The notes beneath the pieces are model-generated. The model had not been told where the DNA came from, made no database searches, and saw only the letters and a list, made by a program, of their open reading frames with translations. Below, piece by piece: positions 40,260 through 60,908 of a stretch of DNA of 64,000 nucleotides. The stretch lies in sequence record PQ330092.1. One strand, given 5' to 3'. The position numbers and the translations under genes are program-made. Each line of letters opens with the position of its first letter. Position 1 is the stretch's first letter.

Positions 40260-40847
40260 ATGTTTTTAAAAAATACTTATGAATTAATTAAAATGCTTCA
40301 AAATATGAATTCCGGTGGCTTGTTTCCCTATTACTCTGAGGATGAAACTCATCGTTTAGTCCTTAAATTGGATGAAACTGGACGTATTATATCACTAAGA
40401 ACAACAGTCCCCAGTGTAGAACCAGTAATTACCAAATCAACTCAAAATTCAGGAACTGCTGTTAAAACACCACAAACATACAACTCTAATTACCAACAAC
40501 CACAAATGTACACGATTAGCACTCCACCTATTAAACGAGTTGCTTGTATTGTGAATATAAAAGTATCTAAGGACTATCGCGACTTAATATCAGTTGAATG
40601 GTCAGAACTAACATCATCATTAGCAACAAATGGATTTGTAGTAACAAATACAGGTCTAGCACAAAATGTGAAAGAAGGACAACAGATCATGAGTGCATTG
40701 TATCTTAGTAATGGTTGTGTTATCATCAATGGTAAGTTGTATAGCGATGCCGACCCCACTGCATTCACTGAAGATTTGATTGGTGATAAAGAATACAGCA
40801 TTCTTGAAATTATGAATTTGAAAAAGGTATATGAAAACCATGACTAG
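40260..40847 (+). CDS. Hypothetical protein
   Basis: ORF with a Q/T/P linker. Confidence 0.65.
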   Translation: MFLKNTYELIKMLQNMNSGGLFPYYSEDETHRLVLKLDETGRIISLRTTVPSVEPVITKSTQNSGTAVKTPQTYNSNYQQPQMYTISTPPIKRVACIVNIKVSKDYRDLISVEWSELTSSLATNGFVVTNTGLAQNVKEGQQIMSALYLSNGCVIINGKLYSDADPTAFTEDLIGDKEYSILEIMNLKKVYENHD

Positions 40848-41412
40848 ATTTCATCAAGATGATTTGCCATTTATACAAGAACTAGAAGAACTGGTGATAA
40901 GTATTATGGATGAAATTAGTACTTGGGATATAACAGTTTTTCGAAATGTATATGATAAAGTGGTGAATTTTAAAAATGTTAATATTGAAGTAAAACATAA
41001 TAATTTTTACTTAACAAAACAATTCATTCTAACTCGACCAGGATCAAAGCCAGTTAAACGTAATTTATCATTCGGACACCTGATTGGTGCAGAAAATGTA
41101 CATGATGAATGGGTTGATTCAATCTATTCGTATACAAAAGAACTTATTCCTGATATTGAGAAAAAATATTATCTTAGTATCACATTAGATGAAAACGGTA
41201 ATCTTAATGCATATTCAATAAATTCTTCTTCAAATGTTCCATTACATTCAGTGACGATTGGTGATAAAAAAATGCTAATAAATTCTGAAACATGGTATAA
41301 TAGAGAAAATTTCGCAGCAGAATCATTTCAGTACTCAGTATCTGAACCAAAGTCACCTTTTGATTTAGTGTTTGTTAATAATATTATTTTACGTTTTGGT
41401 GTAGGAGTGTAA
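40831..41412 (+). CDS. Hypothetical protein, EExxFQxS family
   Basis: C-terminal FAAESFQYSVSEP. Confidence 0.7.
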   Translation: MKTMTRFHQDDLPFIQELEELVISIMDEISTWDITVFRNVYDKVVNFKNVNIEVKHNNFYLTKQFILTRPGSKPVKRNLSFGHLIGAENVHDEWVDSIYSYTKELIPDIEKKYYLSITLDENGNLNAYSINSSSNVPLHSVTIGDKKMLINSETWYNRENFAAESFQYSVSEPKSPFDLVFVNNIILRFGVGV

Positions 41413-41415
41413 TTT

Positions 41416-41769
41416 ATGCTAATTTATTTAAGTGTTATTGTAATTTCATTACTGGTATCATTCGCTGTTCTTAAAATTGTTGCTATTTGTAGAAGTAAGA
41501 TTGATAGTTCTGAAACTAGATCAGTACTTGACTTGATTATGGACCATCCTAAAATCTGTGGTATTATTGTATTATTCGTTGTACTGATTAATACATATAT
41601 TGTCAGGGAACATTTATATAATATGTATGATTGTAGTGTGCGTTCTATTTCACAAGGTGTTGAAACAGACTATAGTTGGTACTATGAGAAATGTCGATTT
41701 AAAAACCAGCATGGTATTTGGGTTGATTTTGATAAACTACGTGGAACACCTTCAGGAGAAGAAGAATAA
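41416..41769 (+). CDS. Hypothetical membrane protein
   Basis: Two hydrophobic segments. Confidence 0.7.
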   Translation: MLIYLSVIVISLLVSFAVLKIVAICRSKIDSSETRSVLDLIMDHPKICGIIVLFVVLINTYIVREHLYNMYDCSVRSISQGVETDYSWYYEKCRFKNQHGIWVDFDKLRGTPSGEEE

Positions 41770-41771
41770 TT

Positions 41772-42263
41772 ATGTTTGAATTCCCAGAAGAGTCATTTAA
41801 CTTCATTGACCCTACTGATGATGGATACCGACATATTAACATTTATAGTAAAGCCAGAACGAAGTTAGGTAGAGATCTATCTAACTTTTCTTCGCATAGC
41901 TTCACACTTGAACCATATGGTTGGTTCCCTTCAGTTGAAACATTTTACTTTTGGTTTTTAACTGGGCAAAAACATGATGACCTTAGAAAAGTATCTGGTG
42001 CAGCAGCAAAAGCAGCCGCTAACAAATATATGCATGATCGAATTGAAATGACGGATGATTGTATTTCTATTATTCAAGATGCTATTTGTGCTAAGATAAT
42101 TCAAAATCCAGAGTTAGCCGAAAGATTAAGAAAAAGCAAGTTGCCTTTTTACCATTACTATGTATATGGTGGTAAAGTTGTAGATGTATCCGACGAACAT
42201 GATTGGTTTGTTAAAACATTCGAATATATAAGAACTGTGTTAAAGGAAAACTATGATGGGTAA
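41772..42263 (+). CDS. NADAR-like protein (T4 gp30.3-like)
   Basis: INIYS..GRDLSNFSSHSF...FPSVETFY, KVSGAAAK, KIIQNPELAERL parallel T4 gp30.3. Confidence 0.6.
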   Translation: MFEFPEESFNFIDPTDDGYRHINIYSKARTKLGRDLSNFSSHSFTLEPYGWFPSVETFYFWFLTGQKHDDLRKVSGAAAKAAANKYMHDRIEMTDDCISIIQDAICAKIIQNPELAERLRKSKLPFYHYYVYGGKVVDVSDEHDWFVKTFEYIRTVLKENYDG

Positions 42264-42534
42264 ATGTTGGGTATGCTTCAAGGTGTTTGATGAAGAATAT
42301 GAAATAATATTAGATGTATTGCCACAGCAGTACATGGTATGTAATGGAAAATACAAATTGGACACCTACCCGACCCCCAAGTACATGGGAATATGTCCTT
42401 TGTGTGATGCAAATGGCGTGTCCAATAGTGAGATTTCATTCACTAACCAAGCCACAACTAACTGTGTATCTGGGTATATAAGAGAGAATCGAGAATATTT
42501 TATTAGGAGATTATATGAACGACAAAATCTTTGA
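42253..42534 (+). CDS. Hypothetical zinc-ribbon protein
   Basis: CWVC and CPLC pairs. Confidence 0.65.
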   Translation: MMGKCWVCFKVFDEEYEIILDVLPQQYMVCNGKYKLDTYPTPKYMGICPLCDANGVSNSEISFTNQATTNCVSGYIRENREYFIRRLYERQNL

Positions 42535-42745
42535 TACATATGACATCGATACTTTACTAACACCATCTGATAACAGTACTGTTAAAATGGACATGTACTG
42601 GATTGTCGTTGATAAAAAAGTATTTAGACATAAAATTACTAAAGTTTGGCAATGTAATAAAAACAAATCTATTGTTGAAGGATTGGCACAATGCATTCCT
42701 AATGCAGAGGTTTTATTTTTACCATATGCATATACAAAGGAATAA
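42515..42745 (+). CDS. Hypothetical protein
   Basis: 76-aa ORF with AGGAG SD. Confidence 0.7.
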   Translation: MNDKIFDTYDIDTLLTPSDNSTVKMDMYWIVVDKKVFRHKITKVWQCNKNKSIVEGLAQCIPNAEVLFLPYAYTKE

Positions 42746-42746
42746 A

Positions 42747-42908
42747 ATGAAAAAAACTTGGAAAATATTCACAATACCTGCTATAATGTTGTTATTGGCA
42801 CTTTTCACACCGCAGAGTCATGTATTGTCTCTTAATATTGTGGAAATAATTCTTCTTGTAATTCACTGTGTCGTGTGTTATAATTATGTAAAAGGTGATA
42901 AAGAATGA
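42747..42908 (+). CDS. Small membrane protein
   Basis: 53 aa, two hydrophobic stretches, SD AAGGA. Confidence 0.6.
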   Translation: MKKTWKIFTIPAIMLLLALFTPQSHVLSLNIVEIILLVIHCVVCYNYVKGDKE

Positions 42909-59646: not shown

Positions 59647-59674
59647 TTGACTAAATAGTTCAGTACTGTATAAT
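59647..59674 (+). promoter_or_regulatory. AGTACT-class promoter
   Basis: TTGACT-aaatagttcAGTACTg-TATAAT. Confidence 0.8.
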
Positions 59675-59705
59675 GTTTGTATCTTAACTTATATGGCAAC
59701 TTGAT

Positions 59706-60059
59706 ATGTTTAGTGAATATGAAGAAGCAATAAAACGCAACCTTGAAGATTACAACTTCCAATTTTATATTTGGGATGAACTGATGAGATTGTGTTTACA
59801 GTGGATGGAAAATGGAGAAACTCCTGACCAACGAACTGTTATATTAAACATTTTGTTACATAAAGATCTTAGTTCAATTAATGTTGAAGTTTCTACTTAT
59901 GTAGAAGAAGATTATAATCCCTATATTTCATATACTTCACCTGTACCAAAGACAGAAGAAGAATATTTTCAAATGAGTACTGTACAAGAACCATTGTTCA
60001 CTTATGAGTTCTATAAGTACTTGGTTGGTGAATTCAAAAAAATGCGAATTAATTCTTGA
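59706..60059 (+). CDS. Hypothetical protein, EExxFQxS family
   Basis: KTEEEYFQMSTVQEP. Confidence 0.75.
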   Translation: MFSEYEEAIKRNLEDYNFQFYIWDELMRLCLQWMENGETPDQRTVILNILLHKDLSSINVEVSTYVEEDYNPYISYTSPVPKTEEEYFQMSTVQEPLFTYEFYKYLVGEFKKMRINS

Positions 60060-60085
60060 CTAAATAATTCAGTACTGAGGATATT
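60056..60085 (+). promoter_or_regulatory. AGTACT-class promoter with degenerate -10
   Basis: TTGACT-aaataattcAGTACTga-GGATAT. Confidence 0.5.
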
Positions 60086-60120
60086 AATATGTTTAAAGAT
60101 GAACGTCCAGATTTGTAAAA

Positions 60121-60154
60121 AGTACTTGACTAAATAGTTTAGTACTGATATAAT
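60121..60154 (+). promoter_or_regulatory. AGTACT-class promoter with two sites 20 bp apart
   Basis: AGTACTTGACT-aaatagtttAGTACTga-TATAAT. Confidence 0.85.
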
Positions 60155-60160
60155 GAATTC

Positions 60161-60493
60161 CACAATCAGACGTATATGGTGTAAGTTACGTCGATGCAAT
60201 CCAGAACAAGATCTCTGGTACTCTAGGAAGTGGTGAATGTTAACCTAGACGGGTTTGATAATTGGACGATAGGCAATTATTACTTGACTAGCAGGTTTAA
60301 ACTAGAGGTGATAGTCCTTCACCAAACTGGAAAACCGGATGGACTTTTATTTAAAAGGGTAAGGCGTGGAAATATGTTTACAGAAGTTGCTTTTAGTAGC
60401 CTGTACGCCCCACGTCAAGGTAGCCGAAAGGCAAGTTAAAACGGGTGGTTATAAAGCTGAATTAACAGCGGCGTTTAAAAGCGTCACCATCCA
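60161..60493 (+). ncRNA. Putative structured ncRNA (about 330 nt)
   Basis: Own promoter, relatively GC-rich, multiple hairpins (GACGT/ACGTC, CCAGA/TCTGG, GGTGA/TCACC, GCC-GAAA-GGC, GCTG/CAGC), closing GGATGG/CCATCC, T run after. Confidence 0.6.
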
Positions 60494-60518
60494 TTTTTTT
60501 TTAATTAAAGTTGGTGAT

Positions 60519-60908
60519 ATGAGTGTTAAAGACATTTCAAAATATGAAGAGTTTCTTAAATCATTTTTGAATTCAAAATTAACATCTAAAGCTTCTAAAA
60601 ATTGGAGTGAGGATAACCCAGAAATCCGTGTTTTTAATGAGAACGATGAATCGTTTATTATTAATGATAACGAAATTGTTTTTGAATCATTAGAAGAAAA
60701 TAAAGAAATAAAAAAACTAAAATATCCTACGTTACGAGATATAGTAAATAGTTTAAGTACTGAATACATTACTTTCAAGCTATGTGCTGATGAAGCAGAT
60801 GAATTCCAGAAACGAACAGTATATGAAAATGTGTTTCCGCATGAATTAAATTCTGTGATATTTAAAGTGTTGGAGAAGGTTTTTTCCGAAAATAGTACTG
60901 GACAATAG
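60519..60908 (+). CDS. Hypothetical protein, EExxFQxS family
   Basis: GGTG SD then ATG at 60519; DEADEFQKRTVYE. Confidence 0.7.
   Translation: MSVKDISKYEEFLKSFLNSKLTSKASKNWSEDNPEIRVFNENDESFIINDNEIVFESLEENKEIKKLKYPTLRDIVNSLSTEYITFKLCADEADEFQKRTVYENVFPHELNSVIFKVLEKVFSENSTGQ

Follow-up and report, generated by a model that had tools for sequence, protein, structure and literature searches.

A family of small paralogous proteins with a shared C-proximal FQxS motif in Escherichia phage JP4 and related jumbo phages

The internal proteins IPI–IPIII of phage T4 are diversified small accessory proteins with a short N-terminal capsid-targeting propeptide that is cut by the prohead protease; they are packaged, and some T4 internal proteins counter host defence. 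Earlier papers on jumbo phages describe multigene families of small proteins which are tandem and lineage-specific and have no database matches. The subject of the present work is a family of small proteins, called here the FQxS family after its conserved motif, which is encoded in bases 1-64000 (the window, 64,000 nucleotides) of record PQ330092.1, the 370,741-bp genome of Escherichia phage JP4, a Rak2-like jumbo myovirus of the genus Asteriusvirus. Its likeness to T4 IPI–IPIII is one of concept, a variable set of small accessory proteins with one short conserved element. However, the FQxS motif is C-proximal, predicted to be helical and internal, the N-termini have no conserved column, and no member was found in virions. 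The family shares the features of the jumbo-phage multigene families named above, and like them it is located in a promoter-rich region, the syntenic part of which in phage CBB was proposed by the CBB authors to be an early host-takeover region (PMC5259590). In contrast to those papers, the family is here defined by profiles, comprises 182 clusters of database proteins and consists of ancient orthogroups conserved in position.

Existing resources do not hold these proteins together. Each member of the window matches one PHROG labelled 'unknown function', a few PHROGs are matched by three or four members, and PHROGs divide the family into about two dozen small groups, about one per orthogroup (phrog_24941, 24321, 24510, 21500, 17453 and about 19 others). 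Pfam-A and NCBIfam gave no consistent match, and the best single-member E values (0.003 in Pfam and 0.03 in NCBIfam) fell on unrelated families. Papers on RaK2, CBB, JP4 and Sharanji and overviews of jumbo phages mention paralogues in general terms only, and none of them delineates the family with its motif and fold. The family is genuine, and no database contains it as one unit; the present evidence firmly establishes a new family, but no new kind of system.

Extent of the family and conservation of its motif

An earlier examination of the window from its letters alone (the original prediction) had claimed sixteen paralogues with variable N-termini and a shared EExxFQxS[TL] motif, and had read them as a modular arsenal in which a common docking module engages one shared partner. 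All sixteen motif strings were found in open reading frames (ORFs) that begin at the positions listed with them, which are ORF starts and not motif positions; ORFs are named by these starts below. The literal motif EE..FQ.S[TL] has five matches in 23.4k aa of plus-strand ORFs compared with 0.000 per shuffle in 1000 shuffles, and a relaxed form has ten matches compared with 0.009 per shuffle, while neither form occurs in 10k aa of minus-strand ORFs. The motif is clearly above shuffled background, and chance recurrence is ruled out by these shuffles.

Full-length iterative profiles were built with the syntenic regions of phages BF17, A4 and RaK2. Thirteen ORFs of the window reached E ≤ 9e-9 (robust members in Table 1), followed below a clear gap by 57286 (E 7e-4), the best spurious ORF, located on the minus strand (0.033), and 55790 (0.065). 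ORF 40831 was not recovered by any family profile, either module or full-length. In a leave-one-out test with a hidden Markov model (HMM) of the ungapped 36-aa module, eleven of the sixteen ORFs came out on top of about 4000 sequences, real and shuffled; 60366 came second, 55790 third, 50967 12th and 57286 24th, and 40831 was not found. The 36-aa module alone is weak in 50967, but its full-length profile match is strong (E 1e-15), and a RaK2 orthologue is present. The GTG start of CDS0108 at 60366 is probably 51 codons early, because the BF17 orthologue begins at the equivalent of the ATG at 60519 (MSVKD...).

Three ORFs of the original list stand apart. Profile–profile comparison of 57286, 55790 and 40831 with family alignments of 68 and 252 sequences aligned the motif only, over 15-33 columns, with P of about 0.004-0.007. 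By sequence, 57286 is a probable diverged member and the membership of 55790 is equivocal. ORFs 40831 and 55790 may be very distant members, because orthologues of 40831 at 26-30% identity keep FQxS[VL], and because RaK2 ORF213, at the position corresponding to 55790, scores E 1.3e-4 with the family profile. AlphaFold2 on 40831 with a 10-sequence alignment gave no usable model (predicted local distance difference test score, pLDDT, 36; predicted template modelling score, pTM, 0.20).

The profile scan covered JP4 1-140 kb, and the family size is therefore a lower bound. Six members were found past the window (64402, 65494, 65912, 66288, 80848 and 86380), and none in 90-140 kb. The stretch from 43.8 to 87 kb of JP4 thus contains no fewer than 20 copies, with clusters at 43.8-51.4, 56.8-60.9 and 63.8-66.7 kb. 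The count of sixteen was hence too high by one to three (40831, 55790, 57286) and yet too low, as it missed 63776 and the six members past the window. The claim of a real and large paralogue family was borne out, with thirteen ORFs at E ≤ 9e-9, a strongly conserved C-proximal motif and a helix after the motif, and the run of six genes in tandem at 45048-47580 was confirmed. Running the HMM on JP4 1-140 kb and on relatives recovered the family at a larger size than had been claimed. Members are about 117-180 aa long and mostly acidic (median isoelectric point 4.7, median net charge -9), with the tailed 49623 and 56801 as exceptions.

Beyond these phages, a profile of 20 members searched with HMMER against 1.84 billion representative proteins found 182 clusters at E ≤ 1e-3. 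Nearly all of them are 115-175 aa, and many were matched end to end. Every named cluster member is a hypothetical protein, encoded either by an Asteriusvirus or Alcyoneusvirus phage or by a contig of about 350 kb that bears the name 'E. coli' and is such a phage. RaK2-like synteny was seen in two of the three further contigs read. A word-indexed search found only close Asteriusvirus relatives, so that the breadth of the family needed exhaustive HMMER; a single RaK2 protein as query returned only RaK2, and an A4 protein returned nothing in IMG/VR. The family alignment has no conserved stretch of 7-10 columns.

Among 150 representatives the motif consensus is T-E-E-x-[FYL]-F-Q-x-S-[TL]-[VIL]-x-D. 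The F is invariant (100%), and T is found in 59%, the first E in 93%, the second E in 83%, Q in 88% (M in 11%), S in 95% and D in 73%, frequencies which are somewhat inflated because the sequences were selected by a motif-containing profile. The position after S is T in 54% and L in 44%, the next position is V, I or L in about 96%, and a helix-start pattern T/S-x-E-D comes after the motif. No N-terminal column is conserved above 35%. The conserved Ser is encoded by TCA, TCT, TCG or AGT, and F, Q and E each use both codons. Because Ser codons switch and nucleotide identity of the motif is only 53%, conservation of the motif acts on the protein. Gene conversion and a DNA-level repeat were rejected as sources of the motif on the grounds of the same 53% identity and TCN/AGT switching.

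The motif had been placed 20-45 aa from the C-terminus. This is correct for fourteen ORFs, but in 49623 and 56801 the Phe lies 79 and 64 aa from the ends of the longest ORFs. Taken over all ORFs, the distance between the shared element and the C-terminus is 27-79 aa. The C-terminal tails of 49623 and 56801 comprise 40-50 residues, and in long-tailed members the motif position is fixed relative to the predicted sheet and not to the C-terminus. A metagenomic Logan contig of SRR10097269 (L011, 6882 bp, 40% G+C) consists almost entirely of nine consecutive members of 178-236 aa. Eight of the nine have TEExYFQxS[TL]I-like motifs and the ninth was recognized by profile only; the motif is about 55-85 residues from the end, and these members keep it directly after the beta region.

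Predicted fold and the place of the motif

The product of 45499 was modelled by AlphaFold2 from an alignment of 52 paralogue and orthologue sequences, with mean pLDDT 87 and pTM 0.80. By DSSP, the model has a helix at residues 5-13, seven strands within 21-87, a helix at 95-102 containing the motif SESLFQRS, a loop and a helix at 112-134. Residues 91-110 have a block-mean pLDDT of about 89, and the motif in this model is helical and inside the domain. Among predicted viral structures, the RaK2 orthologue superposes on the model with a template modelling score (TM) of 0.85, and other paralogues superpose over 139-149 columns at 17-20% identity with TM 0.55-0.70. The paralogue models matched are H6X3Z4 (RaK2 ORF187), a 152-aa protein and the 159-aa RaK2 protein H6X421 (TM 0.63), which judged by protein length is probably RaK2 ORF214, the orthologue of 56801; for the two RaK2 paralogues the superposition extends over 139-144 columns with TM 0.55-0.63. 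Proteins of Yersinia phage fHe-Yen9-03/04 (Eneladusvirus), Cronobacter phage GAP32, Erwinia phage pEa_SNUABM_47 and Pectobacterium phage CBB were matched as well. Whole-length structural matches to paralogues and to proteins of other phages have TM of 0.5-0.85.

As the paralogue models superpose over their whole length at 17-20% identity, the N-terminal parts are best described as one diverged fold. N-terminal parts alone were also compared with 1029 background sequences, with orthogroups left out whole. Half of them (34 of 68) ranked in the top 1% of the background, where fewer than one is expected, and 12 of 68 beat all 1029 sequences. According to these models the family would be one compact domain and not a docking module on unrelated N-domains.

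These data bear on the original prediction in different directions. Its description of the N-terminal part as beta-rich and barely alignable agrees with the seven predicted strands and the weak cross-paralogue signal, and the shared fold that it suggested looking for is found in predicted paralogue structures that superpose over the whole length. In contrast, the proposed modular architecture is not supported, as the motif and the C-terminal helices belong to the same predicted fold as the seven-stranded sheet. The idea of diversified N-domains as different capture domains finds no support either, since the N-terminal parts share one predicted fold.

When the motif is drawn as a helical wheel, its two variable positions, spaced i and i+4, share one face, and the face opposite carries the invariant F together with the S and the hydrophobic residues. 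The F/S/hydrophobic face of the motif helix may therefore be packed into the core, as helical periodicity suggests.

Solved structures gave a single lead. In Foldseek nothing in PDB fell below E 0.1, and PDB sequences searched by profile yielded no meaningful match. The fold of p32 (gC1qR, C1QBP; MAM33 in Pfam), as generally described and as given in PDB entry titles, has an N-helix, seven consecutive antiparallel strands and two C-helices. The order of elements in the 45499 model is the same, and both p32 and the phage family are acidic. Chains of the p32 family make up 10 of the top 26 PDB ranks in Foldseek, with E 0.13-1.5, TM 0.2-0.3 and root mean square deviation of 9-19 Å. However, the phage proteins are 30-60 residues shorter, none of the 16 ORFs matched MAM33 at E ≤ 1, and no p32 chain appeared in the PDB-sequence profile search at E ≤ 10. 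The similarity of the models to p32 is a weak lead, not a relationship.

Evolution and genomic setting

The 68 members of JP4, BF17, A4 and RaK2 form 24 orthogroups, most of them single-copy at the same map position in all four phages. Since orthogroups hold the same positions in four phages, the duplications are older than the divergence of Asteriusvirus from Alcyoneusvirus, and each of the copies was retained. The ratio of nonsynonymous to synonymous substitution rates (dN/dS) is 0.08-0.57 in all 17 JP4–BF17 orthologue pairs, with pooled values of 0.34 for N-terminal and 0.21 for C-terminal parts, and the paralogues are under purifying selection. Median identity between JP4 and RaK2 is 29% for the family and 54% for neighbouring genes (p = 7e-5), and between JP4 and BF17 it is 73.5% for the family and 89% for neighbouring genes. 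Within the genus, window 44000-52000 is 96-99.6% identical in most other Asteriusvirus genomes compared, including PBECO4, 121Q, phAPEC6 and Sharanji; for Sharanji the identity in this region is 96.5%.

In the Salmonella phage SD-6_S16 (L007, 319 kb), small deletions fuse or truncate 45499/45911, 46317, 49623/50135 and 50967. Because these deletions disrupt them, the affected copies are dispensable on a Salmonella host, barring assembly errors. The gaps of SD-6_S16 relative to the window are at 45844-45945, 46392-46429, 48484-48546, 49889-50192, 51063-51293, 56210-56791, 61025-62196 and 62412-62873. They also hit the methyltransferase gene, and the gene at 56230 and the HNH endonuclease gene are lost.

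Near-consensus sigma-70 promoters are abundant around the family. In JP4 1-90 kb, sites matching at 11-12 of 12 positions number 38 on the plus strand and 2 on the minus strand, compared with 3.4 ± 2.1 per shuffle; twelve of the strong sites are perfect TTGACA-N16-18-TATAAT, and strong sites are densest from 40 kb on. The claim that the family lies in a stretch rich in such promoters was therefore upheld (38 compared with 2 by strand). Two strong promoters lie directly upstream of members (45440 and 59647), and others head short operons that contain members. A looser promoter count is not above chance (115 compared with 112.6), so that only the strong sites carry weight. The T4-late-like TATAAATA does not occur in 30-80 kb. 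A literature search found no transcriptome for any Rak2-like phage. These consensus matches suggest early expression from promoters of host RNA polymerase (RNAP).

The JP4 virion proteome of 49 proteins (PMC12648861 supplement; coordinates converted with an offset of 227,836) contains no family member, with the limit that small or low-abundance proteins may escape detection. Its entries from 40-90 kb of the record are non-family proteins at 47595, 52701, 53818, 69313 and 87549, and one more, JP4_54x, was not read. In the RaK2 annotation, no member is flagged as a virion structural protein. A virion role of the family is contradicted by these two protein sets, and so is the earlier suggestion of a phage scaffold as shared partner. 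The three non-family virion proteins at window 47595-47855, 52701-53531 and 53818-54087 were detected by one peptide each, and one of them, CDS0087, was reported in the JP4 study as a new structural protein (PMC12648861).

Table 1. Robust, probable and candidate family members and putative regulatory elements in the window, by position
Feature	Position	Strand	Motif or location	Evidence
Motif-only candidate CDS0055, 193 aa	40831..41412	+	AESFQYSV, Phe codon 41326	Membership not supported
Robust member CDS0064	43854..44282	+	DEDVFFQQSLV, Phe codon 44178	Profile E 7e-15; orthologues at same position in BF17, A4, RaK2
Terminator-like hairpin and T run	45003..45021	+	Just upstream of six-gene array	8-pair stem, 6 G-C, TTTTT; consensus match only
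Robust member CDS0067, first of six tandem	45048..45443	+	NDEYHFQQSTI, Phe codon 45357	Profile E 1e-15; module leave-one-out rank 1, E 8e-5
Sigma-70-like promoter TTGACA-17-TACAAT	45440..45468	+	Intergenic, 31 nt upstream of 45499 start codon	11/12; consensus match only
Robust member CDS0068	45499..45909	+	SESLFQRSLV, Phe codon 45793	Profile E 1e-21; product folded by AlphaFold2
Robust member CDS0069	45911..46315	+	EESFFMASTI, Phe codon 46199	Profile E 4e-16; tblastn orthologues from 100% down to 30% (RaK2)
Robust member CDS0070	46317..46694	+	EEELFQLSLI, Phe codon 46587	Profile E 7.5e-10; 38-bp deletion in SD-6_S16
Robust member CDS0071 (annotated start 46691)	46685..47146	+	EEGFFQQSLI, Phe codon 47006	Profile E 5e-14
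Robust member CDS0072, last of six tandem	47140..47580	+	EESLFQLSTV, Phe codon 47461	Profile E 6.5e-15
Robust member CDS0078, long charged C-terminal tail	49623..50138	+	EEEFFQRSTI, Phe codon 49896	Profile E 3.5e-18
Robust member CDS0079	50135..50587	+	NDEYVFQLSTV, Phe codon 50480	Profile E 8e-12
Robust member CDS0081	50967..51410	+	EEMYFQQLTV (Leu for conserved Ser), Phe codon 51315	Profile E 1e-15
Equivocal member CDS0095	55790..56182	+	EEDEFQKNTT, Phe codon 56081	Profile E 0.03-0.08
Robust member CDS0097, basic C-terminal tail	56801..57289	+	EEERFMLSTI, Phe codon 57092	Profile E 5e-15
Probable diverged member CDS0098	57286..57690	+	EEEFQYNLL, Phe codon 57592	Profile E 7e-4 to 6.5e-3
Sigma-70-like promoter TTGACT-16-TATAAT	59647..59674	+	Upstream of 59706	11/12; consensus match only
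Robust member CDS0106, shortest, 117 aa	59706..60059	+	EEEYFQMSTV, Phe codon 59967	Profile E 2e-13
Robust member inside CDS0108	60519..60908	+	ADEFQKRTV, Phe codon 60804	Profile E 9e-9
Extra member CDS0117 (63776-64201)	63776..64000	+	Window end cuts before motif FQYCL	Full protein E 1e-22 with adjoining JP4 sequence

The window has a G+C content of 29-36% and no N, and nearly all genes are on the plus strand. The promoter-rich stretch around the family also holds genes for a cytosine methyltransferase, a phage sigma factor and a T7-like protein kinase which is annotated as an inhibitor of host transcription, and eight tRNA genes. The tRNA cluster (Gly, Ser x3, Arg, Met, Asn and Thr) occupies window 58324-63759 and has the FQxS family on both flanks. 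One tRNA-Ser call at 61830-61921 has the anticodon ACT, in which A34 is unusual, and an HNH endonuclease gene (61244-61768) sits within the cluster. In RaK2, A4 and two metagenomic relatives, a gene for a PTH2-type peptidyl-tRNA hydrolase is inserted in the middle of the tandem FQxS array (L001 20401-20814, L002 20413-20823, L008 882-1295 and L012 11286-11678); JP4 does not have it there.

The FQxS family is one of several paralogue arrays in the JP4 genome. A second and unrelated family of small proteins, starting with MTHEEW, is interleaved with tRNA genes at window 57680-59635; it has five clear copies of 54-66 aa (57862, 58120, 58639, 59310 and 59471) and a weaker sixth at 57680, and in BF17 three genes of this type are consecutive, 165 nt each. 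The adjoining small ORFs 62197, 62463 and 62877 (window 62197-63092) show a weak alignment both at the N-termini and around a DDY and an EE-DG motif and, by this sequence likeness, may be another small paralogue set. Further on in JP4, three groups are paralogue-like by regular gene size only: eight tandem genes of about 105-125 aa at 99.4-102.2 kb, thirteen minus-strand genes annotated 'regulator of chromosome condensation' (RCC1-like) at 102.9-117.6 kb, and about twenty-one tandem genes of about 60 aa at 117.7-122.5 kb.

Possible roles of the family

The explanation that we favour, with a confidence slightly short of even, is that one small single-domain protein has expanded in this phage lineage, within an early/accessory region; the copies would provide an early cytoplasmic panel of binding proteins, with the motif as a keystone of the fold. 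Each copy is predicted to have an N-helix, a seven-stranded antiparallel sheet, the motif helix, a [TL]-[VIL]-x-D-x-G loop and a long C-helix. The motif would mainly be the site where the C-terminal helical hairpin is clamped onto the sheet, and it would bear a conserved acidic/polar rim and not be a detachable docking peptide. Produced early from host-RNAP promoters, the copies would remain in the cytoplasm and together form a set of small binding proteins, most of them acidic. In each copy, a diverged sheet surface could then bind a different host or competitor target, leading to host takeover or counter-defence. Service as early accessory binding proteins is the most likely function, where early expression, binding as such, the diversity of targets and a structural part for the motif are what we infer; the host-interaction arsenal of the original prediction remains a reasonable guess.

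Several points weigh against this explanation. The fold is a prediction for one member, and burial of the motif is deduced from helical periodicity. Five polar or acidic residues of the motif (E, E, Q, S and D) are conserved at 73-95%, which is more than a purely structural role usually needs and would agree with a functional site common to the members. The deletions in SD-6_S16 may include assembly artefacts and speak of dispensability for one host only. Moreover, the term 'early' is taken from promoter consensus matches only.

Because these five polar residues are unusually conserved, a shared and exposed docking role for the motif stays alive as the main rival. The paralogues would then be adaptors, in which the exposed acidic/polar motif docks all of them on one partner, for instance a protease of host or phage, RNAP, the ribosome or a clamp, and the variable sheet recruits targets. 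We regard this as rather unlikely, although E at 93%, E at 83%, Q at 88%, S at 95% and D at 73% contrast with less than 20% identity in the rest of the protein, switching Ser codons indicate that selection maintains the motif on the protein, and many individually conserved paralogues would fit one handle with many specificities. Against it, the motif is predicted with high confidence to be a helix that forms part of the domain itself, variable positions would occupy the middle of one face of this helix, and the N-terminal parts appear as one predicted fold and not as distinct capture domains. Domain fusions give no hint of a partner either: ten longer database members were scanned for fused domains, and one sub-threshold amidase match was all that was found. 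A bolder version, with still lower probability, is that the motif helix and loop form a common handle that plugs twenty-odd paralogues into one machine of the host or the phage, for instance a protease or the apparatus of transcription or translation, and each sheet delivers or blocks a different host protein. If true, the phage would encode a substrate-adaptor system whose fold has no solved relative and whose logic is like that of the F-box/ankyrin families in large eukaryotic viruses.

It is very improbable that the members are packaged and injected with the DNA, with the motif as a capsid-targeting or processing signal. The T4 internal proteins are similar in concept, a diversified set with one short signal, and the three small non-family proteins of the same region occur in the JP4 virion proteome, with a single peptide each. 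However, the family itself is absent from both virion protein sets, its motif is internal and helical and not an N-terminal propeptide, and the genes are preceded by sigma-70 and not by late-type promoters. Hardly more credit is due to a short linear motif for a known machine, namely a 3C/TEV-like protease site or a beta-clamp-binding motif, in spite of suggestive strings. [LFY]-F-Q with x-S after it is similar to the protease sites LEVLFQ|GP and ENLYFQ|S, Q-x-S-L-[VIL] is similar to QL[SD]LF, members contain SLFQRS, ELFQLS, EYFQMS and FQLSLI, and Q and S are nearly invariant. Such sites are read extended and accessible, those for clamp binding usually in a terminal or disordered segment, but the prediction places this motif in a helix within a folded domain, and various residues, often bulky ones, come after Q. 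Set beside the clamp motif QL[SD]LF / QLxLxL, Q at 88% and S at 95% fit, whereas 54% of the representatives have Thr at position four and about 96% have V, I or L at position five, where Phe is at most rare; there would also be redundancy among twenty clamp competitors. The probability is negligible that unrelated ORFs share the motif by chance or through their composition. Little beyond the motif joins 40831, 55790 and 57286 to the others, but five literal and ten relaxed matches are far above the 0.00-0.05 obtained from shuffles, thirteen ORFs have E ≤ 9e-9, and 182 clusters and a shared predicted fold were found; for the thirteen core members this reading is already refuted.

About 3% of the genes of JP4 belong to one family which has no name in databases or papers. 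Rak2-like jumbo phages of Enterobacterales, of which several are under consideration for therapy, have this family as a defining feature. The family evolves about twice as fast as its neighbours and is ancient and retained copy by copy, which is the signature expected of host-interaction genes. In addition, it offers a tractable set, with 13-20 small soluble proteins, one invariant motif to mutate and a close relative, Sharanji, that grows on E. coli K-12 MG1655. This set may be useful for asking what jumbo phages do with their numerous unknown genes.

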